Positions 7,426 to 62,055 of a DNA stretch of 64,000 nt are shown here, piece by piece. Position numbers and translations under genes: made by a program. The notes beneath the pieces are model-generated. The model saw only the letters and a program-made list of their open reading frames with translations. It was not told the origin of the DNA and ran no database searches. Each line of letters begins with the position of its first letter. Within the stretch, counting starts at the first letter, position 1. This DNA is from Penicillus capitatus. Taxonomy: Eukaryota; Plantae; Chlorophyta. The stretch lies in the NCBI GenBank assembly GCA_965649825.1, contig OZ287695.1, positions 806,001 to 870,000 of the forward strand, written 5' to 3'.

Positions 7426-9940
7426 ATGGGTAAGACAGAAGTGCGTCGAATAATGCTGCGAATACTCGTGTTGGCACTCGTGCTTCATTCACACTCGTCT
7501 CTTGCTAAAAGTAAGCGCTGACAAATCCGGTTGTCCACGCATCTTAACGGTTGGACGCGAGGCAAACGGACACGCGTGTGTTTAGAGACGAAGAGCAAGA
7601 AGAAAGAGTTTATAAAAACAGAAGCCAAAATCAGTGTAAGACACGCCTGTACGTTGTCGACTGGCATTTCACGAATCGCAGGGAGGTGACGAGGCAGAGA
7701 AAGGCCGGTTTCCGTATGCGTGCAGATTGCGGGACCCTGAAAAGGAAGCGGATTTTTGCAGTGGCATTTTGATTCATCCGCTTTGGGTCGTCTCCGCGGC
7801 GCACTGTTTTGAGGAATCAAGACAACCACATCTCAAGGATGATGCAACAGTTCACTGCGGGATTCACAGTATCAAAGACATCAAATCTGAAAATGTGTGA
7901 CAACGGTTCTTTGCTGCTACTAGTGTCGAGACAGTGTCTGTGCCTAGACGTTCAGCATCGTGGATATAAGGATCTATGAAGGTTGGGACGGTGACTATTG
8001 GAACGGTGGCGATATCGTCATGATCAAGCTCGACAGAGAAGCAGAGTTGAGTTTGCCGAAATGGAATGACGATCCTGATAGTCTTGGACAAGGACTCGAA
8101 CTCATCGCCCTCGGTTGGGGGAAAAGGGGCAAATCGGCAGCTCCGCATACACTGCACATGACAAAGACAGTAGATTACGTAGCATTCAAACAATGCTCGA
8201 AGATATGGGACCAATCGTCCAAAGGAGATCCAAGACAGTTGCCTCTTGGAGTGCTTTGCGCTGGCGATGGTAGCTCAGATACGTGCAAAGGTCTGACCCA
8301 TGCCGCTACCAACTTATGATTTGTCGATCTGCCGACATAGGCGATTCTGGCGGTCCACTGATCTTGGCAAACAAACAAGGAGGCGAGATCAAGGATGGAG
8401 AAGCTTCTTTAGACGTCATCTATGGACTGACATCGTTTGGGCAAGAAAAATGCGGAGAGGAAACTGTGCCGAGCATGTACACCGACTTCGTTCCGTATGC
8501 GGAGTAGAAAGACGCATGTTATCAATTGAAGCGGATATCAGATTGTTGTTTCCTTCCAGGTGGATTCGAAACGTCACGGAAGGGCTCCCTACAAGGGAAA
8601 TCGATTTCTCTCCTGGCGAGACGGGCAGGAAGGAAAAACCGCCTTTAACTAACTCACCGTCTTCAGAAACTAAAGAAAGTACTCTGAATCATCGAAGTAC
8701 TCTTTTTAGCCTTATTTCCGCGTTGAAACAGCAAAGGGCGTTGAAGGGCCATGTCTGATCGAATTGCCGCAAAATCAAGCAGATCTCCCAAAGGTGTGTT
8801 CGTTCGCACGCAGCAGAAGAATGCAGAAGTGACTGACTCCCTTGTTGTAGGCAATGGTGGATGTTCTGAGAAAAGACGACGTTGCCTGTGCTCAGGCTAT
8901 CTTGGACGCGGGACTGGATCCAAATACGAAGTACAACTCTGCCAGCTTCAAGGATGCTGAACTGGACGATCCCTTGCTGCACTGGGCAGCGCGGTTCAAC
9001 GCCGCCAAATGCGCCGAGGTGTGACATTGTCATTTCAATGAGACGTCATGTCACACAACTGAGTTTCCTGTTTTCTAGCTGCTGTTGGAGAATGGAAGCG
9101 AAATCGAAGCGGTCAACCAGTGGTTTGAAACGGCGATGTTCTACTGTGCGAAATACGGAGGACCCGAAGTGACACAAGTAAGGCATTCGAGATGGCCTCG
9201 CCTCGCGTCGTCTCCAGCATTCAATTCGATATGAGCGTATAAAGTGGATTGATTCTCTGAAGTTCTCGTTTCCCTGAAGAGCCTTCGGGAACCGTCTTCC
9301 TCACCTTCATCTCCATTGTGTTCAGGTGCTGGTCGACAACGACGCCTTCGTGTCCGCGCGAGACGCGTGGGGAGAAAGCCCATTGATCGAAGCTTCTTGG
9401 AATGGAGAGTTGGAGATTGTCAAGGTAAGACTCGAACGTCCTGTTCTGCAGAAGACAGAGCAGTCATCAGCAGAAAAGCAACACTTTTCTTTTTTCAAAG
9501 ATCCTGCTCGATAACGGAGCCGAAGTGAGTCCGACAGACACATGGTTGGATACGCCTCTGCACGAAGCGGCATGGCAAGGACATGCAGAAATCGCAAAAG
9601 TACGTCTCTGACGGCAGCGATAGTGATGTTCATTGATATCTGATGCGCATCTTTTGTTGTCTTAGGAACTTCTCGACTACGAGGCCGACATCGACGCTGT
9701 CGACGCCACAGGAGAAACGCCTTTGTTCAACGCGTGCGTCAATGGGCATTTGGACGTCGTGGAGGTATGACGCTGGTTCTTCGGCTTTGCAATTGAAACG
9801 TTCTTCAGTTGCTGGTCGCAGCGGGAGCCGACAAAACGATAGCCAACAACAAAGACGAACTGCCATTCACCGTGGCCTGCACGTTACTCAGCTGCTCGCC
9901 GACAAAGAAATCAGAGATTCAGCGACTCGTTTCGCCGTGA
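7426..9940 (+). CDS. Secreted trypsin-like (S1A) serine protease-ankyrin repeat fusion, gene A (13 exons)
   Basis: Signal peptide MGKTEVRRIMLRILVLALVLHSHSSLA; activation site EAK|ISGG; triad motifs VSAAHC, GDIVMIKL and DTCKGDSGGP (Asp189). Four 99-nt ankyrin exons (9079-9177, 9326-9424, 9501-9599, 9666-9764) plus N- and C-cap exons. All introns are GT-AG and in frame to TGA at 9938-9940. Confidence 0.92.
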
Positions 9941-18810: not shown

Positions 18811-21288
18811 ATGAAACACTCTTTGCTTTTGCATCGCCATCGCCTCTATCTTCTTTCTTTTCTATATCTGCTGCCGTTTCAAGGAGCCGTCAGCAAAACA
18901 ACGCACAGTAAACACTGAGTCAGACGGCATTTGTGGAGTGGGTCGGTTTGCTTAGAGAAAACGAAAACGGCTTCTTACGTTACAACGAAACCTGTTTTCA
19001 TAAACGTCAGTTCGTCCAATTAGCGGGAGAGCGGCTGTGCCGAGTGTCGTCGTCTTGCAGGCAAACGAAGCTCCCAGAGGAAGGTTCCCTTATGTTTGCA
19101 GTCTATCCGTCAGAACAGACGAACTGCACAAATGTGGAGGCGTGCTCATTAAAGAGCAATGGGTTGTTACTGCCGCGCACTGTGTCGATCCAAACCTCCC
19201 CGATTCTCTTGGCCGGAATCCGATCGTCCGATGCGATGTCCACAACCTCGATTCCGACGAAGGCAAAGTGAGTCATGAGTTTGACCTCTCTTTTGCGATC
19301 AGCAGCGGTTCCAGTTTATGAGTGTGGCGGCATCCTTTCTACACGAATCGTGGACGGGAGACCACAAAGACGGTTTTGATATCGCCATGCTCAGGCTGAA
19401 TGAAAAAGCCGACCTGCCGTTGCCGTCCGTGGACGAACAAGGCGGCGATTTTAAATCTGGTCGTCTTTTCACTGGAGTGGGCTGGGGGAAGGACACTGAT
19501 GGAAATCTGCAGAAATCTCTCCAGGTTTCTGATGATATGCTGTACAGGGACCTGGACGACTGTAGACAATACTACATAAATAAAATTTCGTCCCACACCA
19601 TCTGCGCAGGATCCTTGGGCCGGAATGCATGCGATGGTCTGCGTCCTCAGCAATGTGCTCCATTCAAGGCTCTTGATTTTTAAAGGCGATTCTGGTGGCC
19701 CCTTGCTCATTCCAAGCATGCCCAGCGGCAACATTTCGGCTGGAAAACCAGAGAAGGATCTGCTGATTGGCATTGTATCGGCTTCTCCCGAGAACTGCAA
19801 TGACGATGCACCGTCACTTTTCATGAGTATGGGTTATTTTTGGACATGGGTTCAACAGATTACCGAGGGTCGTTCGGTAAGACGTCATTTGCTGTTTCTC
19901 TTCTATGCGGCTTTCTCCGAGTGTAGAACACCGCAGTCCCGTCTTCTATAGACACATCTGTGAATCTTCCTGGCGCAGAGGAATCCGCCGGAAATAAAGA
20001 GGAGAAAGAGCAACAAATTATCGAAAAGAGACGCAAACGATTCGCGCACTTCTCACAGAAGGCTTTATTTTTTGTAACGCAGATAAAGGTGCCGAAACTG
20101 AAGCAATCGTCTCGATCTGTGTAGGAGGCGATCAAAGCTATTACTAAGAACGACACCCTGACATTGAAAGCCGCTCTGATGGAAGGACTGAATCCAAACT
20201 CTACGTTTAATGACGAACCGTCGTCCGGATACCAACTGAACAAAGACTCTACACTGCTACACTGGTCAGCTGCCTTCCATGCACTACAGTCCACAAAGGT
20301 AGGCATTCCTTGATGTCGCAGTTGGATGACTATCTACATACGATTTGGTCCTCATTGTTTCTGCCTCCGATAACTGAGATGTGAAGGTCCTTCTGAAGCA
20401 TAAAGCAGAGGTTGACGCTGTCGACAAGAAGGGTCTAACACCGCTGCACGTGGCAGCGATTAATGGATCTACACATGTGGCAAGGGTGAGAACAACAGAG
20501 CTGAGAAATTGCTCCAGCGTACTGAATCTCAGAACAGGCAACTCAGTTGACTTTAGGTTTTATTAAAATCCAAGGCTGAAGTCGATGCGGCCGATATCTT
20601 CAGAGAGACACCGCTACACAAAACAGCTATGCATGGAAACGTCGCCGTGGCGAAGGTGAAGAAATGATAATTCTGAAAGATGGGCAGATGTATACACATG
20701 AACAGATTCTTATTCTCGAAGGAGCCAACCTCAATGCGTTGGATGCTAACGAATGGAGACCTTTGCACGAAGCTGCTTACCATGGACACGTCGATGTTGC
20801 AGAGGTTCATTCCAAGTATTCTAAACCCGGTCAAAGGAAAAGCCGTTCGGCAGGTTCTCCTCGATAGTGGAATGGATGTCGATGCCGTAGCAGACAAAGG
20901 AAGGGTTGCACTCCATCTGGCGGCGCAAAAAGGGCATGCCAGAATCTTAAAGGTCTTAGGAGGATCATCCTTGCTGTCTGCTTTTCGCGTGATTGCGCCG
21001 TTTCAGTTCCTGATTGATCGCGGAGCTGAAATTGACGTCTCTGACGAACAAAGGAACACGCCACTTCACATCGCGGCAATGTTTGGACGGTCAAAAGCGG
21101 CAAAGGTATGCGTCAGATTAGAATTCTCGTGCAGCGACGGATGCACAATGAAGGTTCTCGTGGACGCTGGATCCTCCATTGCTTTCCGCAATGTAGACCG
21201 CAAAAAACCTGCAGAACTCATCTGCATCCACGACGACGGTTGCACGAGAGAAGTTCGAAATGCGCTCTTAGATCTTTTGCTTCCGTAA
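18811..21288 (+). CDS. Secreted S1A serine protease-ankyrin repeat fusion, gene C (13 exons)
   Basis: Signal-like N-terminus MKHSLLLHRHRLYLLSFLYLLPFQGAVS; motifs VTAAHC, FDIAMLRL and NACDG|DSGGP (Asn189). Five 99-nt ankyrin exons (20387-20485, 20557-20655, 20706-20804, 20854-20952, 21007-21105). The C-cap ends LLLP-TAA. Confidence 0.9.
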
Positions 21289-22397: not shown

Positions 22398-24932
22398 ATG
22401 GGTGGGACAGAAGTGCGTCGAATAATGCTGCGAATACTCGTGCTGGCACTCGTGCTTCATTCGCACTCGTCTCTTGCTAAAAGTAAGCGCTGACAAATCC
22501 GGTTGTCCACGCATCTTAACGGTTAGACGCGAGGCAAACGGACACGCGTGTGTTTAGAGACGAAGAGCAAGAAGAAAGAGTTTATAAAAACAGAAGCCAA
22601 AATCAGTGTAAGACACGCCTATACGTAGTCGACTGTCATTTCATGAATCGCAGGAAGGTGACGAGACGAAGGAAGACCGCTTTCCGTATGCGTGCAGATT
22701 GCGGGACCCTGAAAAGGAAGCGGATTTTTGCAGTGGCATTTTGATTCATCCGCTTTGGGTCGTCTCCGCGGCGCACTGTTTTGAGGAATCGAGACAACCA
22801 CATCTCAAGGATGATGCAACAGTTCATTGCGGGATTCACAGTATCAAAGACATCAAATCTGAAAATGTGTGACAACGGTTCTTTGCTGCTACTAGTGTCG
22901 AGACAGTGTCTGTGCCTAGACGTTCAGCATCGTGGATATAAGGATCTATGAAGGTTGGGACGGTGACTATTGGAACGGTGGCGATATCGTCATGATCAAG
23001 CTCGACAGAGAAGCAGAGTTGAGTTTTCCAAAATGGAATGACGATCCTGATAGTCTTGAACAAGGACTCGAACTCATCGCCCTCGGTTGGGGGAAAAGGG
23101 GCAAATCGGCAGCTCCGCATACACTGCACATGACAAAGACATTAGATTACGTATCATTCAAACAATGCTCGAAGATATGGGACCAATCGTCCAAAGGAGA
23201 TCCAAGACAGTTGCCTCTCGGTGTGCTTTGCGCTGGAGATGGTACCTCAGATACCTGCAAAGGTCTGATCCATGCCGCTACCAACTTATGATTTGTCGAT
23301 CTGACGACATAGGCGATTCTATGATTGGTCGATCTGACGACATAGGCGATTCTGGCGGTCCACTGATCTTGGCAAACAAACAAGGAGGCGAGATCAAGGA
23401 TGGAGAAGCTTCTTTAGACGTCATCTATGGACTGACATCGTTTGGGCAAGAAAAATGCGGAAAGAAAAGAGTGCCGAGCATGTACACCGACTTCGTTCAG
23501 TATGCGGAGTAGAAAGCCAGATGAAATCGAAGTCCATGTCAGAATGACGTTCCCTTTCAGGTGGATACGGAACGTCACGGAAGGGCTCCCTACAAGGGAA
23601 ATCGATTTCTCTCCTGGCGAGACGGGCGGGAAGGAAAAACCGCCCTTGACTAACTCACCGTCTTCAGAAACTAAAGAAAGTACTCTGAATCATCGAAGTA
23701 CTCTTTTTAGCCTTATTTCCGCGTTGACGCAGCAAAGGGCGTTCAAAAACCATGTCTGATCAAATTGCCGCAGAACCAAACAGATCTCCCAAAGGTGTGC
23801 TCGTTCGCACGCAGCAGAAGAATGCAGAAGCGGACTGGTCAACGTAGGCAATGGTGGATGTCCTGAGAAAAGACGACGTTGCCTGTGCTCAGGCTATCCT
23901 GGACGCAGGACTGGATTCGAATACGAAGTACAACTCTGCCAGCTTCAAAGATGCTGAACTGGACGATCCCTTGCTGCACTGGGCTGCGCGGTTCAACGCC
24001 GCCGAATGCGCCGAGGTGTGACATTGTCATTTCACTGACACGCTTCATGTCACACAACTGAGTTTTCTGTTTTCTAGCTGCTGTTGGAGAATGGAAGCGA
24101 AATCGAAGCGGTCAACCAGTGGTTTGAAACGGCGATGTTCTACTGTGCGAAATACGGAGGACCCGAAGTGACACAGGTAAGACATTCGAACTGAAGTCGC
24201 CTCGCCTCCCCTCCAGCATTCAATTCGATACGAGCGTACTTAACGACATTTCTGGACTTCTCGTTTCCCTGAAGAGCCTTCGGGAACCGTCTTCCTCACC
24301 TTCATCTCCATTGTGTTCAGGTGCTGGTCGACAACGACGCCTTCGTGTCCGCGCGAGACGCGTGGGGAGAAAGCCCATTGATCGAAGCTTCTTGGAATGG
24401 AGAGTTGGAGATTGTCAAGGTAAGACTCGAACGTCCTGTTCTGCAGAAGACAGAGCAGTCATCAGCAGAAAGGCAACACTTTTCTGTTTTCAAAGATCCT
24501 GCTCGATAACGGGGCCGAAGTGAGTCCGACAGACACATGGTTGGATACGCCTCTGCACGGAGCGGCATGGCAAGGACATGCAGAAATCGCAAAAGTACGT
24601 TTCTGGCAGCGATAGTAATGTTCATCGATATCTGATGCACATCTTTTGTTGTCTCAGGAACTTCTCGACTACGAGGCCGACATCGACGCTGTCGACGCCA
24701 CAGGAGAAACGCCTTTGTTCAACGCGTGCGTCAATGGGCATTTGGACGTCGTGGAGGTATGACGCTGGTTCTTCGGCTTTGCAATTGAAACGTTCTTCAG
24801 GTGCTGGTCGCAGCGGGAGCCGACAAAACGATAGCCAACAACAAAGGCGAGCTGCCATTCGACGTGGTATGCACGTTGTCGAACTGTTTGTCAAAGACAG
24901 AATCCGACATTAAGCGACTAGTGGCTCCATGA
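22398..24932 (+). CDS. Secreted trypsin-like protease-ankyrin repeat fusion, gene B (recent duplicate of gene A)
   Basis: Same 13-exon structure as A with an intact frame to TGA at 24930-24932. Activation site EAK|ISEG; triad present; four 99-nt ankyrin exons. Confidence 0.9.
23288..23353 (+). repeat. 33-nt tandem duplication spanning the 3' splice site and the GDS codons of gene B
   Basis: ATGATTTGTCGATCTGACGACATAGGCGATTCT followed by ATGATTGGTCGATCTGACGACATAGGCGATTCT; gene A has a single copy. Confidence 0.95.
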
Positions 24933-41800: not shown

Positions 41801-42987
41801 AAAAGGCTCCGCCCTGTTCCGAGGCTTTCAGGACGAGCCGTCTTCATCCAAGGGCGATCTGCACGATGTCGTTACGGATAACGAATTCGAGAAGAGACTG
41901 CTGACGGAAGTGGTGCCTCCATCTGAAGTGGGCGTGGGATTCGATGACATCGGGGCGCTGGAGAATGTCAAAAAGACGTTGCACGAGATCGTGATGCTGC
42001 CGTTGCAGCGACCTGAGCTGTTTGCACGTGGTCAGCTATTGAAGCCCACCAAAGGCGTATTGCTTTTTGGACCTCCTGGTACTGGAAAGACGATGCTGGC
42101 GAAGGCGGTGGCGGCGGAATCGGGAGCCAATTTCTTAAACATGAGTGTCTCCTCCATCGCTTCCAAATGGTTCGGAGAGGGAGAGAAATACGTGCGCGCC
42201 CTGTTCTCTCTGGCGCACAAGATCTCGCCGTGCGTTATCTTTGTCGATGAGGTGGATTCTCTGCTGGGAAGACGTGACAAGACCAACGAACACGAAGCCA
42301 TGCGGAAAATTAAGAACGAGTTCATGGCAAACTGGGATGGACTGCGCACGAACGAACATGACCGGTGAGGACGCAGCCGATGTGACGTGTGCCTGTTTGT
42401 GAGATCTGTTTTCTAGTGTACTGGTCCTGGCGGCTACGAATCGTCCAATGGATCTGGACGACGCAGTGATTCGGAGAATGCCTCGTCGTCTGCTGGTGGA
42501 TCTGCCAGACGCTGAGAACAGGATCAAGATTCTGAATACGATCTTGCGTCACGAAGATGTGGATTCAGGATTCAGCTATGAAGAAATCGCTGCCGTGACA
42601 GATGGCTATTCAGGAAGTGATCTAAAGAATTTGTGTTTAGAGGCTGCCCTACATCCTGTGAGAGATTTTCTCAAGCGAGAGAACGAACAGGTTGCCCCTC
42701 TACCTGTCGCTGAGTCGACAGAGGACGCGACTCCCATACGCACAGACGACGAAAAACTTGTCCTTTCCTTGACGCCTAAAAAATCCAGTTCGACAAAGCA
42801 TGCCGACAAGAAGGCCAAAACGGTGCAGCTACGTCCGATCAGTATGGAAGATATGTTGGACGCCGCTCGACAGATTGCCTCGAGTGTATCGAACGATGCC
42901 ATCAGTATGACAGAGATTCGAAATTGGAATCAGATGTACGGCGAAGGCGGCAGTCGTCAGAAGACGCCTCTGTCCTATTTCGTATGA
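38848..42987 (+). CDS. Plant-type FHA-domain AAA+ ATPase (Msp1/ATAD1/spastin-related), multi-exon
   Basis: N-terminal FHA-like WGVL..FTIGRENCDWNIK; degenerate first AAA region (RRILLTGPGG); Walker A GVLLFGPPGTGKTMLAKA; Walker B VIFVDEVDS; second-region motif ATNRPMDLDDAVIRR; C-terminal WNQMYGEGGSR. Confidence 0.92.
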
Positions 42988-43543: not shown

Positions 43544-44323
43544 TTACGAAGGGATGATAGGATTCTGTTCTTTGGTGAGGGAAATGTCGTCGGGTGCAAA
43601 AGACTGCAAGATGGTTCGCAGGTGAACGATCTCTCTGTCTTTTTCATGAATGATTTTGTGCAAGGTTTGAATCATTTCTTGGGAGGAGCGCAGTTTGGCA
43701 TCCGTTTCTTTCAGTGTCTCATTATTACGTTCGACGGTGCGTGAGATGGCCTTCAACTGAAGTTCCAGTTCAAGATCAGTTCTATGAATTCGGTCAAGCA
43801 GCCTGGCAATACCACACACGATGGATGGCTCATAAAGCCAGGGATCCAACGCTGACACCTTTCTTGGGAATGCTTAAGTTCTCTGCATTCGTGTTGCAAA
43901 CGCTTGTAGTCATCACAAGAGTAACCCACGTCATCCACACGTGTTGGCGGCACAAGTGTCGTCGTCGAAAGCATCCGCGTCGTACTAAGCATTCGAAAAC
44001 GGACACCCCTGATTCCGCTGTTCGGTCGTGGCGTAAGTGCCTGCAGCAAAGAAGTTGAGTATGGGCAGAGGGCATGGTAGGACTTAGGTAACAGGTGCGT
44101 CATGTTTGTCGGTTATCCCATGTCGAACACTCGGTGTGTTGAGGTTGGCTGGCATGCGAAGCCAACCGCGAATGAACCCCCGTGTCCACGCAAAATTGTT
44201 CTCCGCGTCGTCGCCAGATTCGTTGTCCTCAATTGCGTCACTGACATAGTGCAATACTGGACGACGACTCCTGGCGTTTCGACTAAGCGAGACGCGAACC
44301 TCTTGACGCGCGCCATCCGGCAT
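43544..44323 (-). CDS. Hypothetical coiled-coil protein (3 exons, ~225 aa)
   Basis: Two GT-AG introns join ORFs 44084-44332, 43753-44103 and 43544-43858 in frame. The C-terminal half is heptad-rich (YKRLQHECRELKHSQERLLDRIHRTDLELELQLKAI...). Confidence 0.6.
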
Positions 44324-45778
44324 TTTCTCCACTGCCTCCGACTCTAACCTATAGCGCGCCTTTGAATGGAAGCATGAATCGTGCGTTTGTTATGTTGCGT
44401 TCTTAACGGTAGACAGGCCGCGTGTATTTGCGCGAAAATGATGATGCCGACAGTCAGCTGAGATATCGACCAATACAAAGGTGGCATGCCACTGTGCTGG
44501 TCCAATACTTAAAGTACTGCATTCGAGATGCGTCGAAGTTAATGGAGAGCATGAGAATGGATGTCTCTTTGATGTCGAACGGACGGTACGTCTCATCGAG
44601 AGCCTCTCGTCCGACGGATGGAACCGAGCTTTCCGGTAAACTTCATGTTTTTTGGACACTAGGCGATAACCGACGGCCACGCGCGGAGAGTTTTTTGGAG
44701 GTCATGGAACCGACAAGGCAGCTTCCCAATCGCCGCCTCTGTGCAGCAGTCGAATGACGGCGGGGCGACGAAGCACACGATGTGTGGTCGAGCCATTGGA
44801 CGAAGGCCGGATCTCTGTGCTGTCGGAAACGCCTTCGAGTGTTTCGTGCACTTCTGTTATGATAGCGATGGTCTGTACACAGGTTCTGTTTTTATGTATG
44901 TACTGTTGTCGTGCGATTCTGCTCTGCCTCGTACGGCGACGACCGTTGCGTCATCCCATGGCACCTGAATCTTCGCCAGGCGGCGCGGTTCTCTAAGGAC
45001 TGCCCGCTGTCGCACAGGGCTTTCCTGATGCGGTCGCCTGCGCTGCGTATAGGGAGGTGCATGAGCGAATCCTGCTCGAGTGAGATGGCATCCTTTTCGC
45101 CCTGTGCAGAGGATGGCACAGCAAAGAGCGCGTTGGAAAGAGCGGCTCGTGTTTGTCGGGGACTTCCGAGACTGTGCCAACAGTCGGTTCAGACAGAGCG
45201 TTCGTCGATGGTGGCGCAGAGCTGTTGATTATGTAAGGATTCGAAGGTTAGGTTAAAAAACACGGCAACTGATAACCGTCAGGTACCGACGCATGGAAGC
45301 CCTCCGAAGGCCATTCGGCCGACGGACGTCGCGCATCTCCCTCCACGTCTGCACACGGACCAGATGGATGCGGGACAGAAACACGTCGTCTCTCGTTGCG
45401 GACGACAGGCATAGGGCCGACCTGCATTTCCCATTGCAGCCTATCTATCCATAGAAAATGGTGCCGTGCCGTCAATCGTTGGTCTTTTCTCTGTTGTTCG
45501 ATGGCGGCGCATATGTGTGCCAGTAAAGGAGAGCTCGGCCTGCGTAGCTGTCGCTATAGAACAGATAGACGCAGTTTTGATGCCCACCTATACCCTGGAC
45601 AGGACATGTCTGTGCCCTCGCACATAAAGACAACGGTAGACTGCGGCAGACAGACAACGAAAGACCTGACCACACTTTGAGGACCTCTCAGTGTACGTTC
45701 TGACGAAGAAGAGCAGCGAGAGGCGCTTTAGGACCGTATCTTTGCTTAAGGTATGCAAACATGAAGCGTGATAAAGTA

Positions 45779-46897
45779 CTAGGGTTCGTTGAACATTTGA
45801 ATCTGGATTCTCTCTTCGCGAAGTTTGACACCATACAAACGCGAAATCTCGAGAAAAGCAAAAAACCAGACTGGGAGCACGACAATAAGCGCATCGATTC
45901 CTCCCCATATAAGAACCCCGGATAACCATGCAAGACAGGATACAATGACTGCCTTGAGGAATTTACCATACGGAAAGTAATCGGCGGAATCTTGACATCC
46001 AAAGTGAGAGGCGAGACGCGAAAACCAACGACTGTTCAAAACAGAGTCACCGCAGGTAATGCAGGAAAGGACTTCGGTGCTTTCTTCTGCACACTCTCCA
46101 TTGTGCAGGCAGCGTCCGTACAGTAAGATGAAAACGAGACCCAGGCCGCCGGCAAGTCCGATGCCGAGCTCGATGCTACACCATCCGCCAAAATGGGCAG
46201 CACAGCGCGTGAGAGATCTCTCACGGCATGCCCAGTGATGGCAGTAGCGATCCTCTCTTTGACGGCACTGGCAGAAGGACGATTCGATTTCGTAACTGGA
46301 TGAGATATTGCCCTTCCAGCTGTAACAGTACTCCCCTGTCACATCCTCCTCGAGGCAACGATAGTCTTCCGCCTCGGAGTATCCATCCGAACTGACATCG
46401 CTGCATGACCACTGGGCACAGTAGTTCTCATTGGCCGCCGGCAGGTCACACGCACATGTCAGACTGTTGCTAAGGTAGACATCCTCACAAGAGCTCGAGC
46501 CGCCGTCTATTCCGCCGCCGCCTGTGCAATGGGCCTTCTTTTTGACATGCGTTGTCTCGCACGTCCATCTCGTGCAGTAGGAGAGCCTCGCTGTCGCATC
46601 GATGCATGTACAAGTACCGTGTTCCCTTGTATGCTTGCTTTCTTCTTCAGTTGTCCAGTGACGACAGTAATTGATCCTGTTGTCTAAGCAGGAATAGACT
46701 TCTGAATCCGTCGCCTTAGCATCTCTCCACAGGCCTCCTCGGTACACTCCCGACTCGGTAAAATATCCGGCGTCGCGTTTCAGTCGGTGCCACGAGGACA
46801 GATTTTTATCCAAGTCCACGAACTCTTCGTTAGAAATCTTACGAGCGGCCACAGAGAACCAGCTCATGGCGAAAAAGAGAACACTGTACGCGTTCAT
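45779..46897 (-). CDS. Cys/Trp-repeat cell-surface membrane protein 1 (signal peptide, 3 predicted TM helices), intronless
   Basis: 372-aa ORF; hydrophobic N-terminus; RLKR|DAGY; five C-x(6-8)-YC-xx-W units; hydrophobic segments GIGLAGGLGLVFILLY and AVIVSCLAWLSGVLIWGGIDALIVVLPVWFFAF. Confidence 0.88.
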   Translation of the reverse strand: MNAYSVLFFAMSWFSVAARKISNEEFVDLDKNLSSWHRLKRDAGYFTESGVYRGGLWRDAKATDSEVYSCLDNRINYCRHWTTEEESKHTREHGTCTCIDATARLSYCTRWTCETTHVKKKAHCTGGGGIDGGSSSCEDVYLSNSLTCACDLPAANENYCAQWSCSDVSSDGYSEAEDYRCLEEDVTGEYCYSWKGNISSSYEIESSFCQCRQREDRYCHHWACRERSLTRCAAHFGGWCSIELGIGLAGGLGLVFILLYGRCLHNGECAEESTEVLSCITCGDSVLNSRWFSRLASHFGCQDSADYFPYGKFLKAVIVSCLAWLSGVLIWGGIDALIVVLPVWFFAFLEISRLYGVKLREERIQIQMFNEP

Positions 46898-47389
46898 CCT
46901 GTAAAGCGTGTTGTTTACTGCTCAGTAGAAACGATTAAATACTGAGGTCACACGATCTTCATGTTGAAAGTGTGTCTGCATATCATTTCTTCTCAGCGAA
47001 CAAGAAGATAGCTAAAATGGTCACAACCGTCGCCTTCAAAAAGCAGAACGGTCGACACGCACGACCCTCATCGCAACGCACAGGCGATTCGCACCAACAG
47101 GACGCGTTTACAAAGAAACGATCACACACACGGCGGCGGTCCTTATCTGTCGCAGTGCCCCACCATCCCCTGCCTCGAAGCAGATTCTCGTCGTGATCGA
47201 GTCACAAAGACGCCATCCATCGCGCAGAATTCTCTAAAGTATGCGCACCTTGTCGTGATCCTTTGCGTCACACTTTTAAGATGTCATTGTTGGCCGAAAA
47301 TGCTCTTCGATGCTATACGTCATCACTCTTTTTTGGTCATCCGTCCGACAGTAGACAGCATCAGGAATCACTTCCTTGAGCCCACGTCA

Positions 47390-48505
47390 TTACACGTTTG
47401 ATATCTCAACAGTCGAACCTGTTTGCCGAGTCCTGTTTCGGCGTTTCGTTGCACAGTCCAAACGTAAAAACTCAAAGGTAACAAAAAACCAGATCGGTAG
47501 AACAATGATCAGCGCATCGACGCCTCCCCATATGAGCACCCCGGACAGCCATGGAAGACAGAGCAATACAATAGCAATACAAAACCTCCAGACGCGAAAA
47601 CAATCAAACGCGCCAGGACGACGCAAAGAAGAGACAGAGTCCTCGCACTCGTCGATGTGCAGCATAACACTGAGGCATCGAACGAAGGGCAGCCAATTGA
47701 AGCATCGCGTGTTCGGTTCGTATCGGAAAGCGCAGCCACACAACAACAGAAAGAGGAGACCAAAGCCGCCACCCACAAACACACCGACCTCCAGTCGGCA
47801 CCACCCACCGAAATGCGCTCGACAGCGAATCACTGTTCTCTCGCGACATTCCCAGTACTTACAGAAACGTTCCCCTCGATCGAAGCATTGACAGAAGGAC
47901 GATTCGATGGCATACCTCGACGAGGCGTTTCCTCTCCACTGGTAGCAATACTGTCCGCCAACATCTTCGGTGAGGCACTGATAATCCTCCTCCTCCGAAT
48001 ACCCATCGGAGGTGCGTTCGCTGCATTTCCACTGTGAACAGTACATTCGATTCTCGGCAGGTATCTCGCAGCTGCACGAAAGTGCATCGTCCTGTTGGCG
48101 TTCATAGCACGCCCTGCTGTGGCCTTCCGTTCGACAGTTTGTTCTCTTGCTGATATGCGACGTCAAGCAATTCCATTGTTGGCAATAGGGCTGTTCGGTT
48201 TCGGCGCACAGACATGTGCCATACTCAATCTTCCGTCGGTTCTCTTCTCTGAGTGACCATTGCCCACATCCCGTTTGTGTGATATTCATGCAGTGATAGA
48301 CCTCTCGCTCAGTGTAGCTTGCGAGGCGCCACAGGCCTCCTTTCCAAACGCCGTTTTCCGTATAGTAGCCGGCATCTCTCTTCATGCGGTTCCACGAACG
48401 CAGACCCTCTCTGAAATCGCGAGACAGTTCTTCCTCTGACAGTGCTGTCGCTGAGAACGAGACCATTATCGAGACGAAAAGAAGACAACGGCGTTCTGCT
48501 AGCAT
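47390..48505 (-). CDS. Cys/Trp-repeat cell-surface membrane protein 2 (tandem paralog of 45779-46897)
   Basis: 371-aa ORF with the same architecture; shares KRDAGY.TE.GV..GGLWR, SDGYSE.EDY.CL.EDV.G.YCY.W, IESSFCQC, RC.AHFGGWC and WLSGVLIWGG.DALI.VLP.WFF. Confidence 0.88.
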   Translation of the reverse strand: MLAERRCLLFVSIMVSFSATALSEEELSRDFREGLRSWNRMKRDAGYYTENGVWKGGLWRLASYTEREVYHCMNITQTGCGQWSLREENRRKIEYGTCLCAETEQPYCQQWNCLTSHISKRTNCRTEGHSRACYERQQDDALSCSCEIPAENRMYCSQWKCSERTSDGYSEEEDYQCLTEDVGGQYCYQWRGNASSRYAIESSFCQCFDRGERFCKYWECRERTVIRCRAHFGGWCRLEVGVFVGGGFGLLFLLLCGCAFRYEPNTRCFNWLPFVRCLSVMLHIDECEDSVSSLRRPGAFDCFRVWRFCIAIVLLCLPWLSGVLIWGGVDALIIVLPIWFFVTFEFLRLDCATKRRNRTRQTGSTVEISNV

Positions 48506-49020
48506 CTTATGGAGGCACTGAGGCCGACTCCGTTATGCAGACACGCAAAGACTTGGATAAAATCCGATTGTGCGGCGACCTGCGTTGAAGGTACTGCAAC
48601 ATTCCGACTGTTGCAGTGCATCGAGGTGTACAGCATCGATCCGTGCACGATCGATCGATCGTAACCGTTTCAACCATCTATCCACATGAAAGGACGACCC
48701 TCCATCGAGGGCCCTTCACTAGCGCATGCATAGACGGTGCAGATCCACATCATCATTTGAAAAACATAACACTCCACAGCTGGCGAAGTGGAGGAGAACG
48801 CGATCGGTGTGCTTAGGCGTCGATGATGGGACGTTTACAATGGAAGGGCCTGGCTGGTTTAAAGAACGTCTATCGCACTTCCTTTTGGGCACCAATCAAA
48901 TAACAACGAACATACCAGCGCGTGTTGGTTGTCAATCGAGCCCGCTAGCTGCTGGCCATTCAAATCTAGATCCAAGTGAATATCGCATAGAGATCATCAA
49001 TAGAATCGACGAAAAGCTCT

Positions 49021-58840: not shown

Positions 58841-61800
58841 TCATGGACGCAGGAGTTTCTCCAGATAGGTTTTAGTCGAGTGCGGACATTCAAAAAAAGT
58901 TTCAGTGCAAATAACATCGAAAGGCGTTTCTCCGTTATCGTTGGTTGCCGTCTTCGAGGCTCCGGCATCTACCAGAACCTGAAAATACGCTATTAAACTA
59001 TAAGATGCTATATCTGACTCGCCTCTGCTGCTTCGTCCTCTCCGTCTTTTGCTGCATTATGAAGCGGAGTGTCTCCGTCCGTATCTTCCCTATCGAGAGA
59101 GGCATCTTCTTCAACTAACAACTGCAGCAGGCCAAGTGAAATAAAAAACCGTACCAAATGTGGGCGATCCACCTTCACAACCTCAGGATTCCCTCCTACC
59201 GCGGCGAGATGAAGTGGCGTCTGTCCTAGGTGTGTCTCGTCGCTAACCTTCGCTCCGTTGTCGAGGAGGATCTGGCAGTCGACAGTTTTTGTCAACGAGC
59301 TAAGAACGTAGATGCGCAACTGACCTCGACCATCTCGGTGTCTGCGTAACGTGCTGCCAAATGCAGAGGAGTCCATCCATCGTCCTTGGCCTGGCTAGCG
59401 TCCGCTCCGTACTCGAGGAGGACCTGGCACTCGACAGTTTTGTCAATGAGCCAACGACGTCGATGCGCGACTGACCTCGACTATCTCGGTGTCTGCGTAA
59501 CGGACTGCCAAATGCAGAGGAGTCCATTCTTCGTGACAGACCTGGTTGACGTCAGCTCCGTACTCGAGGAGGACCTGACAGTCGACAGTTTTGTCGATGA
59601 GCTAACGACGTAGATGCGCGACTGACCTCGACTATCTCGGTGTCTGCGTTATAACGTGTTGCCAAATGCAGAGGGGTCCATCCATCGTCATCATGGTTGG
59701 CGTCAGCTCCGTTCTCGAGGAGGACCTGGCAGTCGACAGTTTCTGTCAATGATGTATCGACGTAGTACGTCACCGACCTCGACCACTTCAGCATCTGCGT
59801 AACGTGCTGCTATATGCAGAGTACTCCATCCATCGTCCTTGGCCTGGCTAGCGTCCGCTCCGTACTCGAGGAGGACCTGGCACTCGACAGTTTTGTCAAT
59901 GAGCCAACGACGTAGATGCTCAACTGACCTCGACCATCTCGGCGTCTGCGTAACGGACTGCCACATCCAGAGGAGTCCATTGACTTTCAGTGGCCGCGTC
60001 GATATTAGCTCCTTCTCCCAGAAGCATCTGCACATAACACAATAATTAGCGAACAGACGCCAAAAAGTATACTACCTTCACGATATTGGGATATCCGTAC
60101 TCGGAAGCCACATGCAAAGCTGTCCGTCCGGTTTTAGAAACGGCCTCGATATCTGCTTTGTAATCGAGAAGAATCTGTGAATCACATAAGATGCAGGAGA
60201 TTAAAATGTGCTATTAGATGCAGACTTCAAATATCTCAGAGTGTCCGTAGCGTGCTGCGTAATGCAATGGAGTCCATCCATCGACGTCAGTGGCGTTCAC
60301 TGCAGCGTCTTCCTCAAGAAGAATCTGTGAATGGACATTTGAGCGGATGATTTGGATCATATTGAAATTACCTTTGTCACTCTTGCGTGTCCGAATTCTG
60401 CTGCCACATGCAAAGGGGTCACTTTATAAGTACCGTTGTCTTTGTTGTCCACGCCTGCTTCGTACGACAGAAGAACCTTCATTTACGCAAAGCACTCGTG
60501 CTTGATTGAAAAATGAGTTGTCCTCTATCTGTTATCCAGAGTCGATGCTGAATGCTTTACCTTAGTGCATTCTGACGCATTGTAATACGCCGACCAGTGC
60601 AACAGAGTAAATGGTTCCCCTGGCGGATAACCTGACATTTGAGATGCATTGTAGAAAGAATCTGGATACACTCCAATCAAAAGTGCGGCCTCCAAAGTCA
60701 GGACAGTGTCATTTCTTATAGCGTCAATTGCTTCCTATGAGACCATTTGCATATGTACAATGAGATTTGATTCATCATCGATGTTACATTCAGCAGTTCT
60801 GTATCGGAGAATTCCTTCAGCCGTTCGCACTCTTCATCAAGTTCCTGTTGTTCCAACTTCTCTTTCAGTTTACCATCTGCAGGTTCATCTACCTTTGGAA
60901 ATGGTGGAACACTTGGCGAAGGTTCTTCTGATGGTTCTGGCACCTGCACAAAGCGATCAGGACAGAAGAAGAGATTTGGAGAACAGTTTACTTCTGGACC
61001 TTCACCAATTGTTTCCTGAATCCAATCCCAGAATGCGCCAATGCTGGTGTAAATACTTGGTGCAGGGTCATGGCAATCATCAAACCCCATAGAGGTTATG
61101 CCGACAATCATATCAAGTTCTGGATCCCCAGCCTTTATCTTCTTCGAGTTATGGGGGATCAATAGTGGACCACCAGAATCACCTTCCACACGGAAGACTA
61201 ATCAGAAAGCGGTACTCTCGTATTCCAAACCTTTGCATGTGTTAGACTCCTCCAATCCAACACAAATCGAGTGATTCTTGACCGAGTTTTCGAGGAACTC
61301 TATGCAGTCGTGTTCATTCACATACTGTAGCTTGCTCGTCATCTGTAAAATATTTGGACGATTTCCACTTCCATCGTCTCCCCAACCCAGAGCGGTGAAC
61401 AATGTGCCCTCTGGAAATTCTCCTTCCTGTTGGCTAAACAATGGCTCTATGAGATTCGCTTCTTTGTTCAGTTTGACGACGGCGATGTCGTAACCATCGT
61501 TCACGTCACCGTTCCAAGACTCGGGCCAGTGGCTTTGTACTCCGCTGAGTACCTAGCAACATCCATTTCGGGAACAAAGTGAATAAACGTGAACAGTTCA
61601 CTTCGCCGCTGTCGTTTGCGTCAAGAGTGTGAATACCACAGCGGATAAGCGGATGTCTGCCGAGACTTTGCGAAGAGGCTGAGTCGACGCAGTGCGCTGC
61701 AGTGATGACCCACTGCTGTCGAAAAAGCACTCCGCCGCAGCGGTGGAGTCCATCTTCTCGTGCCGAGAGACTACACATATAAGGGAACCGTCCCCTAGGC

Positions 61801-62055
61801 GCATCTACGCCATCCTACAAGATACAATGGTCACGACGCAGCGAAAGGAACGTGCGAGATTACGACAATGTAGGGCCCTTTTCCCCCTTTGGAGCTTGGC
61901 TCTCTTGTTTTATCTAAACAATCACCCGTGTCGGAGTGACAACCGACAGAAGACTCACTCTGGACTTGAGGACTGGCGTCGGCATAGAAGTGCAGCAGGG
62001 ATGCTAACAGGAGCAGAACTGCGATGGCTCTTTTTGGCAACGAGGGAAACGACAT
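58841..62055 (-). CDS. Secreted S1A serine protease-ankyrin repeat fusion, gene D (17 exons, 10 internal ankyrin exons)
   Basis: Signal peptide MSFPSLPKRAIAVLLLLASLLHFYADA; activation site GPY|IVDG; motifs ITAAHC, YDIAVVKL and NTCKG|DSGGP (Asn189). Ankyrin exons 60476-60372 (105 nt) and nine of 99 nt from 60324-60226 to 59121-59023. The last intron is GC-AG; the C-cap exon is 58978-58841. Confidence 0.92.
59272..60027 (-). repeat. Five-unit tandem repeat with 151-nt period (52-nt intron + 99-nt ankyrin exon) inside gene D
   Basis: The exon/donor junction sequence recurs at 59321, 59472, 59623, 59774 and 59925. The introns are mutually homologous (GTCAGT..ACAAAACTGTCGA(C/G)TG(C/T)CAG). Confidence 0.97.

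Follow-up and report, generated by a model that had tools for sequence, protein, structure and literature searches.

The stretch of DNA analysed here, 64,000 nucleotides of contig OZ287695.1 from assembly GCA_965649825.1 of Penicillus capitatus (positions 806,001 to 870,000; hereafter, the window), carries on its minus strand two head-to-tail genes, denoted here A and B, which are intact open reading frames (ORFs) running from an ATG to a stop codon and occupying, in the ORF list, exactly positions 45779..46897 and 47390..48505, respectively. The two proteins align with 45% identity over 360 residues (E 7e-101), so the tandem pair of paralogs described in the original prediction is indeed present and intact. 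Both proteins combine a signal peptide, a conserved N-terminal motif, a Cys-rich ectodomain made of five hairpin-like repeats and a membrane region with three predicted transmembrane (TM) segments. In comparisons with Pfam, PDB and BFVD, they represent an undescribed eukaryotic protein family that is new also in its predicted fold, a rating that reflects the absence of a clear fit to any of the known families compared and the lack of any annotated relative. The features of the locus are given below in window coordinates; residue numbers are those of the respective protein, mean pairwise identities refer to 11 paralogs, and structural assignments come from AlphaFold2 (AF2) models with their predicted local distance difference test (pLDDT) scores.

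Genes and segment
45779..46897, minus strand: gene A, single-exon ORF of 372 amino acids (aa), family member (ORF list)
47390..48505, minus strand: gene B, single-exon ORF of 371 aa, paralog of A (ORF list, alignment)
46898..47389, no strand: spacer of 492 bp between the head-to-tail genes A and B (from the ORF coordinates)
43953..49001, no strand: segment of ~5 kb that holds both genes and is missing at the syntenic site of a relative (tblastx, tblastn)

Gene A
46841..46897, minus strand: putative signal peptide, residues 1-19 (MNAYSVLFFAMSWFSVAAR), an N-terminal hydrophobic segment read from the sequence
46715..46807, minus strand: N-terminal motif L.SW..LKR.AGY[YF]T.sG.YRGGLWR, residues 31-61, 67% mean pairwise identity (also AF2)
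46775-46786, minus strand: proposed RLKR site, within the N-terminal motif
46208..46714, minus strand: five hairpin units, residues 62-230 (hhalign; ten AF2 strands, pLDDT 90-98), with the limits A-type 62-87, B-type 88-118, variable insert with a Cys pair 119-139, B-type 140-170, A-type 171-201 and B-type 202-230
46112..46207, minus strand: juxtamembrane loop RC-x7-C (RCAAHFGGWC) and glycine-zipper TM1, residues 231-262
45971..46111, minus strand: hypervariable Cys-containing loop, probably cytosolic, residues 263-309, 8% mean pairwise identity
45827..45970, minus strand: TM2, invariant I-W-G-G turn and TM3, residues 310-357
45779..45826, minus strand: short basic tail with 3 K/R residues, residues 358-372, and stop codon

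Gene B
48440..48505, minus strand: putative signal peptide, residues 1-22, read from the sequence
48317..48409, minus strand: N-terminal motif with RMKR|DAGYY, residues 33-63 (alignments)
47828..48316, minus strand: five-hairpin array, residues 64-226 (motifs and alignment)
47732..47827, minus strand: RCRAHFGGWC loop and glycine-zipper TM1, residues 227-258
47591..47731, minus strand: variable loop, residues 259-305 (ratio of nonsynonymous to synonymous substitution rates, dN/dS, 0.31)
47390..47590, minus strand: TM2-WGG-TM3 and basic tail ending in ISNV, residues 306-371, and stop codon

Repeat structure and predicted fold of the ectodomain

Each ectodomain contains an even number of cysteines, 20 in A and 20 in B, and all 20 are conserved. 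The repeat motifs are located at C70, C96/98, C148/150, C181 and C209/211 in A and at C72, C98/100, C144/146, C177 and C205/207 in B. The original prediction described them by the single pattern C-x(6-8)-[YF]C-xx-W; five units are indeed found in A, with equivalents in B, but the spacing is x7 to x9, and two types of units have to be distinguished, namely, the A-type, C-x7-9-C-xx-W, and the B-type, CxC-x7-9-C-xx-W-x-C. Likewise, an aromatic residue generally precedes the second Cys, but unit 1 of B has G in this position. The units are arranged in the order A-B-[insert]-B-A-B; A, B and most full-length members have five units, of which three belong to the B-type, and in every unit, a conserved Trp is located three residues past the second Cys.

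The similarity among the units was assessed by cutting an alignment of 46 sequences (A2) into the five units and comparing the resulting profiles with hhalign. The B-type units (residues 88-118, 140-170 and 202-230 of A) match one another with E ~1e-10, the A-type units (62-87 and 171-201) match with an E of 3e-9, and the double unit 62-120 aligns with 173-231 over the full length, with a probability of 98.3% and an E of 1.3e-14, against E values of 0.01-0.08 for the controls with reversed columns. With unit E-values in the range of 1e-9 to 1e-14, these are true internal repeats, beyond chance, and the ectodomain derives from the duplication of a two-hairpin module.

The AF2 models lead to the same subdivision. 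A model built from 12 sequences reached a pLDDT of only 58 and was superseded by the run with 46 sequences, in which the mean pLDDT is 88.1, the predicted template-modeling score (pTM) is 0.80, and 247 residues have a pLDDT of >=90. In this model, the stretch of residues 61-230 folds into ten long antiparallel strands that follow a strict meander, such that the five predicted hairpins coincide with the five repeat units, and the second strand of each hairpin has a more hydrophobic face that bears the Trp and Cys residues. The N-terminal motif contributes a helix (36-42) within a block of pLDDT ~97 that spans residues 31-60; at the other end, the strands pass straight into the TM1 helix (242-266), which is followed by the variable loop with a pLDDT of only 57-65. 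From the AF2 strand limits and the positions of the cysteines, we infer that an inner disulfide across C-x7-9-C staples each hairpin and that the B-type units carry an additional, outer disulfide between the first Cys of CxC and the Cys past the Trp. The Cys pair of the variable insert probably forms a disulfide of its own because both residues are lost together in three paralogs.

As modeled, this fold has no detectable solved relative in PDB or BFVD: a Foldseek search of both databases with the AF2 model yielded no match at E<=1e-3. The best among the weak alignments involve meander barrels of 8-11 strands, including a designed 10-stranded barrel, nitrobindin, lipocalins, OprH and PagP; overall, these barrel alignments have E values of 1e-3 or worse, query TM-scores <=0.21 and root-mean-square deviations of 12-17 A, with 8uzl_C reaching a Foldseek probability of 0.96 and a target TM-score of 0.45, and nitrobindin, target TM-scores of 0.31-0.38. 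Nitrobindin, the lipocalins and the designed 10-stranded barrels resemble the model in the antiparallel meander order of the strands. However, these barrels are not disulfide-stapled, built of repeats or fused to a domain with three TM segments, and the sheet of A and B is a modeled one, for which closure into a barrel is not implied.

Two further analogies appear useful. A single B-type unit, with its CxC...C-x4-C cysteines distributed over two arms, can be compared to the protegrin and tachyplesin hairpins (C1-C4, C2-C3), in that the distances between its cysteines are consistent with two nested cross-strand disulfides, one inner and one outer; those, however, are free peptides of ~18 residues without sequence relationship to the present family, whereas in A and B, five units are predicted to be joined in one sheet. 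At the level of the entire protein, the TNFR Cys-rich domains, EGF and laminin-EGF domains, TSR and Shisa follow the same logic, that is, a signal peptide, repeated disulfide-rich modules and membrane anchorage, and the conserved Trp of each module recalls the Trp ladder of TSR. The differences are that A and B have three conserved helices in place of a single-pass anchor and long two-stranded hairpins in place of knotted mini-domains.

The family, its distribution and its evolution

A word-indexed search of 5.8 billion proteins returned only 14 relatives, all from metagenome assemblies of the European Nucleotide Archive (ENA), and the family profile, run exhaustively with HMMER against 1.84 billion cluster representatives, detected 135 clusters at E<=1e-3, of which 64 reach E<=1e-10 and 30 reach E<=1e-30. 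Members from named organisms come from the brown algae Ectocarpus fasciculatus (CAM9858132.1 and CAM9719478.1), Discosporangium mesarthrocarpum (CAM9835215.1) and Undaria pinnatifida (EP00904_P003204), with profile E values between 1e-38 and 1e-33, the choanoflagellate Salpingoeca kvevrii (EP00050_P012059; 3e-16), the raphidophyte Chattonella subsalsa (MMETSP0947; 7e-9) and the dinoflagellate Amphidinium massartii (MMETSP0689; 6e-5). Some of the members are represented in MMETSP transcriptome assemblies and are, accordingly, expressed. The named members are 22-32% identical to A, and every one of them is unannotated, being either an 'unnamed protein product' or without a name.

The core of the N-terminal motif, AG[YH][YF]..G.[YW].GG (residues 43-55 of A and 45-57 of B), was found in 57 of the 144 proteins fetched, many of the others being fragments, and is recognizable in distant members as AG[YH]...[YF]Y.GG. 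The brown-algal proteins have in common with A and B the motif in the form AG[YH]..Y.GG, the array of A-type and B-type hairpins, and the end with three TM segments and a WGG-type turn. Unlike A and B, the choanoflagellate type possesses an extra N-terminal Cys knot and lacks the juxtamembrane C-loop, and members of the dinoflagellate type (P0077, P0086, P0104 and P0126) contain long inserts and, ahead of the family domain, an additional Cys-rich domain at the N-terminus together with a hydrophobic segment. In the 871-aa protein of Chattonella subsalsa (P0082), two Laminin_G_3 (ConA-like lectin) domains follow the membrane region, at residues ~400-870.

The original prediction did not recognize the repeat or the architecture, and none of our comparisons with Pfam, PDB sequences or, by Foldseek, PDB and BFVD structures connected them to a known family. 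In Pfam, A has no match at E<=10, B has only two irrelevant matches in the TM region (E 0.19 and 0.36), and 15 other members gave nothing relevant, the sole match being to the appended Laminin_G_3 domains of the Chattonella protein. Searches of the PDB sequences with the single protein and with a profile of 46 sequences found no relative, the best E value being 0.033, for a GABA-B transmembrane region. Searches of the literature, including the Phaeoexplorer brown-alga genome paper (10.1101/2024.02.19.579948), yielded no description of the family. A scan of JGI metagenomes detected only two short loci, and a scan of IMG/VR for a giant-virus route behind the patchy distribution gave 43 pattern matches, none of which was confirmed.

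Several specific identities were considered and rejected. The EGF, TSP_1, TNFR_c6, Furin-like, GCC2_GCC3, WSC and PAN repeats produce no Pfam match at or near the gathering score. A Cys-loop receptor is contradicted by the lack of a Pfam Neur_chan match, by Foldseek probabilities of 0.1-0.2 with TM-scores of 0.16-0.18, and by the presence of three rather than four membrane spans. KAR5/GEX1/Brambleberry, which we take to combine a Cys-rich lumenal domain with C-terminal TM helices and which, for this reason, appeared to be a candidate, gives no Pfam Kar5/Tht1 match, and AF2 places no coiled coil before TM1 of the present proteins.

The close relatives of A and B reveal how the pair evolves. In ENA, sample ERZ25074695 includes a 792-kb contig that shares ~99.3% identity with the window and carries a 99% identical allele of A; gene B is found in this sample twice, as an exact copy on a 51-kb 20x contig (L012) and as a 99.7% identical version on the 792-kb 36x contig (L001). 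These contigs represent two haplotypes or strains within one species, with a synonymous divergence between the two versions of 0.02-0.04 and an allele dN/dS of 0.06-0.08. The same genome encodes several further, dispersed paralogs with 30-50% identity. In a second species (ERZ26696514), the pair occupies the equivalent site, flanked by the genes for the mitochondrial carrier and the AAA protein. The B ortholog of this species is intact and 85% identical, with a dN/dS of 0.16 that is distributed unevenly along the protein: 0.13 in the ectodomain, 0.12 in TM1, 0.31 in the loop, the highest value among the longer segments, and 0.03 in TM2-TM3, the lowest in the gene. In agreement with the very low dN/dS of this region, the only stretch in which A and B retain similarity at the DNA level, 110 nt with 75% identity (45829-45938 and 47452-47561), codes for TM2-WGG-TM3. 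The A ortholog is 69-72% identical, with a dN/dS of 0.27-0.38, and, next to the intact B ortholog, is frameshifted at an A6 run (GTCGAAAAAAGG; L011 9798-10897, contig ctg302562), so it is either a young pseudogene or the victim of a homopolymer assembly error.

In another relative (L005, SRR33785046), the AAA protein of which is 84% identical, the locus is colinear with the window up to 43953 and again from 49001 (tblastx, window 36-52 kb), and ~0.7 kb (L005 5467-6153) takes the place of the 5-kb segment at the MatE-AAA-Mito_carr locus; tblastn searches with A and B gave no match in this syntenic interval. Neither flanking repeats nor mobile-element genes were found around the 5-kb segment, and no DNA repeat was found in the 492-bp spacer between A and B. 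The pair is kept in one sister species and missing at the site in another; the family, although constrained, has therefore undergone gain or loss among closely related species.

Altogether, the intact ORFs, the paralogy and the dN/dS values well below 1 show that these are real genes under constraint, and the available evidence strongly indicates that they encode selected membrane glycoproteins of the secretory pathway. The alternative, that the ORFs are non-functional, arising by chance or as decaying copies of mobile or viral genes, draws on the frameshift in the A ortholog and the absence of the 5-kb segment from a relative but is highly improbable given the two intact ORFs of the window, the conservation of all 20 ectodomain cysteines, the low dN/dS and the lack of IMG/VR relatives, flanking repeats and transposon genes.

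Topology, the dibasic site and possible functions

The signal peptide, the RC.AHFGGWC motif (residues 231-240 of A), the glycine-rich TM1 and the variable Cys-containing loop, all noted in the original prediction, are present in both A and B. According to hydropathy analysis, one TM segment follows RC.AHFGGWC, and a double hydrophobic segment of ~46 residues is located near the C-terminus of both proteins. Mean pairwise identity peaks, at 78%, in the juxtamembrane loop, which together with TM1 includes the invariant residues R231, C232, G238, W239, C240 and G253; TM1 itself has the family consensus G-x-G-x-G-G-G-x-G and, in A, a hydropathy peak at 248-255. The loop that follows varies in length between 18 and 55 residues. 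The TM2-TM3 region, which contains the invariant G327, I330, W331, G332 and G333, had been described as highly conserved; this fits TM2 (50% mean pairwise identity) better than TM3 (29%). Asp, Glu, Lys or Arg comes next after the I-W-G-G turn in many homologs. A crude hydropathy count over 62 long members gives, as the most common pattern, three hydrophobic spans past the final hairpin; this pattern is shown by 37 of them, and many of these have a polar break between the last two spans. A similarly crude rule assigns a signal-peptide-like N-terminus to 51 of the 62. In the 11 paralogs, the loop contains 0-8 K/R residues and the tail, which P0013 nearly lacks, in most cases 2-9, compared to 0-1 in the region of the I-W-G-G turn.

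The predicted signal peptide, the even number of Cys, the N-x-S/T sequons present in the ectodomains and the K/R-rich loop and tail, in contrast to the WGG turn, strongly indicate that, in agreement with the original proposal, the Cys-rich domain does not face the cytosol but lies outside the cell or in a lumen. The pattern fits a topology in which the N-terminus would be outside, followed by TM1, a cytosolic loop, TM2, a short outer turn, TM3 and a cytosolic tail.

As a side observation on the tail, six paralogs (P0003 and P0005-P0009) end in the heptapeptide VHPS[ST]QV, and B ends in ISNV (47390-47410); both termini fit the class I PDZ-ligand pattern S/T-x-V-COOH, which the end of A (FNEP) does not.

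A conserved convertase site, R(L/M)KR|DAGY, had been proposed for A and B, with the implication of proteolytic maturation at KR. The sequences RLKR (RLKR|DAGY, residues 38-45 of A) and RMKR (RMKR|DAGY, residues 40-47 of B) are present and are canonical R-x-K-R motifs, so a kexin- or furin-type convertase could conceivably cut after them, removing a pro-segment of ~20 residues and leaving DAGY as the new N-terminus, a scenario that is compatible with a receptor role of the mature protein. The KR pair is retained in 9 of 11 close paralogs (R-x-K-R in five), in the A and B orthologs of the second species, and in 19 of 57 cluster representatives with the N-terminal motif. Nevertheless, the conservation of the site across the family is incomplete: two close paralogs have RQ or ER, no named member has the pair, the brown-algal members have KV, KT, KI or ET in its place, and the raphidophyte, the choanoflagellate and many metagenomic proteins lack a dibasic pair as well. 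Furthermore, the surrounding segment ranks second in conservation within the protein, with near-invariant L33, S35 and W36 upstream of the site, which would be unexpected in a discarded pro-segment, and AGYY..G.Y.GG conserved downstream; in place of an exposed, poorly conserved linker, AF2 predicts an ordered helix. In the choanoflagellate type, conserved cysteines precede the motif, so that, at least there, the upstream region belongs to the fold. Cleavage confined to the subfamily of A and B is a less simple explanation than a structural motif; we consider maturation at this site unlikely, the KR dipeptide most likely having a structural role within the N-terminal motif.

For the function of these proteins, we tentatively favor a role as surface recognition receptors or adhesins, an explanation that we regard as plausible, if somewhat short of probable. 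Of the original proposal of a receptor or adhesin family, the receptor-like architecture and the outside location of the Cys-rich domain are retained here, without the proteolytic maturation that was part of it. The structural frame of this scenario is strongly indicated: the signal peptide directs the N-terminal domain of 220 residues outside the cell or into a lumen, and this domain is a rigid ten-strand meander of five hairpins, each presumably closed by its own one or two disulfides, flanked by the N-terminal motif rich in Gly and aromatic residues and by the juxtamembrane C-x7-C loop. The chain then spans the membrane three times, with the glycine-zipper TM1, the cytosolic hypervariable loop and a predicted tight TM2-WGG-TM3 hairpin, and ends in the short basic cytosolic tail. 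Under the receptor scenario, the ectodomain would be the recognition surface for a ligand or partner. The TM bundle would be more than an anchor, probably self-associating via the glycine zipper or docking a membrane partner and so relaying the binding event, and the variable loop and the tail, which in many members ends in S/T-x-V, might supply cytosolic contacts specific to each paralog. The notion of an active membrane region stems from the dN/dS of TM2-TM3, the invariant WGG, G327, I330 and G253, and the confinement of the A/B similarity at the DNA level to this region. The presence of several dispersed paralogs in a genome, together with presence or absence between sister species, is the behavior of a recognition family.

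Certain observations weigh against this interpretation. Both AF2 models show residues 304-370 as a single unbroken helix, in conflict with the TM2-TM3 hairpin that the original prediction proposed; the topology and the signal peptides are themselves read from hydropathy and charge counts. The strong constraint on the TM region fits a channel- or transporter-like role equally well as, or better than, a passive receptor, and the topology fits an internal compartment, such as the endoplasmic reticulum (ER), the Golgi or the vacuole, as well as the cell surface.

The first of these two functional alternatives is an oligomeric channel or ligand-gated pore, in which the glycine zipper of TM1 and the TM2-TM3 hairpin would assemble the pore, and the beta-rich ectodomain would be the gating or ligand-binding module, by analogy with, but not homology to, P2X, ASIC and Cys-loop receptors. 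TM2-TM3 is the most constrained part of the gene, and the TM1 consensus and the invariant WGG turn are suggestive as well, considering that glycine zippers are frequent in channel-forming helices. The weak Foldseek alignments to whole pentameric receptors, over ~400 columns, point in the same direction, but these are non-significant, no Pfam channel family was matched, and conserved charged or polar residues that could line a pore are missing, save for a few Ser and Asp near the turn. We consider a channel unlikely.

Rather less likely still is a factor of the endomembrane lumen, for instance, a cargo receptor or a factor for the assembly of cell coverings in the ER, Golgi or secretory vesicles. 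This would be consistent with the topology, which suits a lumen equally well, with the acidic ectodomain (isoelectric point 5.4-5.9) and with a possible sorting function of the VHPS[ST]QV tail of the six paralogs. However, the taxa that bear family members differ widely in their coverings or have none (apart from the brown algae, they include a naked raphidophyte, an athecate dinoflagellate and a thecate choanoflagellate), and several diverged paralogs with presence or absence between sister species are atypical of housekeeping trafficking factors.

A bolder variant, which we consider quite improbable, is that A and B represent a new class of eukaryotic chemoreceptors, in which a disulfide-stapled ten-stranded beta-barrel with a new fold would bind a small ligand, for instance, a lipid, a hydrophobic pheromone or a metal ion, and would be coupled directly to a glycine-zipper, three-helix bundle that oligomerizes into a gated pore or a signaling unit. 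This would imply an ancient family, shared by stramenopile algae, dinoflagellates and choanoflagellates but lost in other lineages. In that case, the brown-algal members would be candidate pheromone receptors of brown-algal gametes; to our knowledge, no such receptor has been identified so far.

This combination of domains, confidently predicted, repeat-built and disulfide-stapled, is present in at least three eukaryotic supergroups and evolves under purifying selection; none of its 135 clusters carries an annotation. With it, the catalogue of protist surface proteins gains an extracellular module and a small transmembrane module, both of them new; as far as we know, the receptors of algae, dinoflagellates and choanoflagellates are mostly uncharted. 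The hairpin unit is a simple and probably very stable building block that might be of interest to structural biologists and protein designers, and the extreme constraint on TM2-WGG-TM3 points to a membrane-embedded activity. Nonetheless, uncharacterized Cys-rich membrane families are numerous, and the function of A and B is deduced from sequence and models, so the finding is a solid lead rather than a solved mechanism.

Genomic context and other observations

The window is eukaryotic and, in addition to A and B, contains genes for TRAPPC8, a MatE protein, an AAA ATPase, a mitochondrial-carrier protein, an LRR protein and a lipase. Neither in the window nor in 147 kb of related loci was there a match to a tRNA or an Rfam family. 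The original prediction had speculated on a link to secreted proteases, which the genomic context does not support: a trypsin gene directly precedes a family member in only one of the seven loci examined, and the nearest trypsin gene in the window is ~12.5 kb from the A/B pair. Four genes for trypsin-like (S1) serine proteases, each split by short introns, are located at 7706-8480 (+), 19073-19894 (+), 22672-23458 (+) and 60983-61808 (-); this is a local expansion within the 64-kb window.

The genome is intron-poor, has ~50% GC and contains Ty3/gypsy elements. Among named proteins, the best matches of its AAA ATPase are from land plants, with only ~53% identity. In the second species, a Ty3/gypsy-type retroelement with aspartic protease, reverse transcriptase, RNase H and integrase (L003 18093-21113) is located 7 kb from the family member P0007. 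The DUF7751-AAA ATPase gene of the window is interrupted by a 52-nt GT..AG intron (42365-42416), whereas its ortholog in L005 is one uninterrupted ORF of 553 aa, so that an intron was gained or lost between close relatives. Finally, a plastid-bearing alga, possibly with a primary plastid, is suggested by two plastid-type proteins encoded in related loci (Trigger_N, L007 1458-2228, and DUF3611, L004 19718-20936), which have N-termini that are rich in S, T and R and lack a hydrophobic signal peptide; with start codons that are uncertain, these N-termini resemble simple transit peptides.

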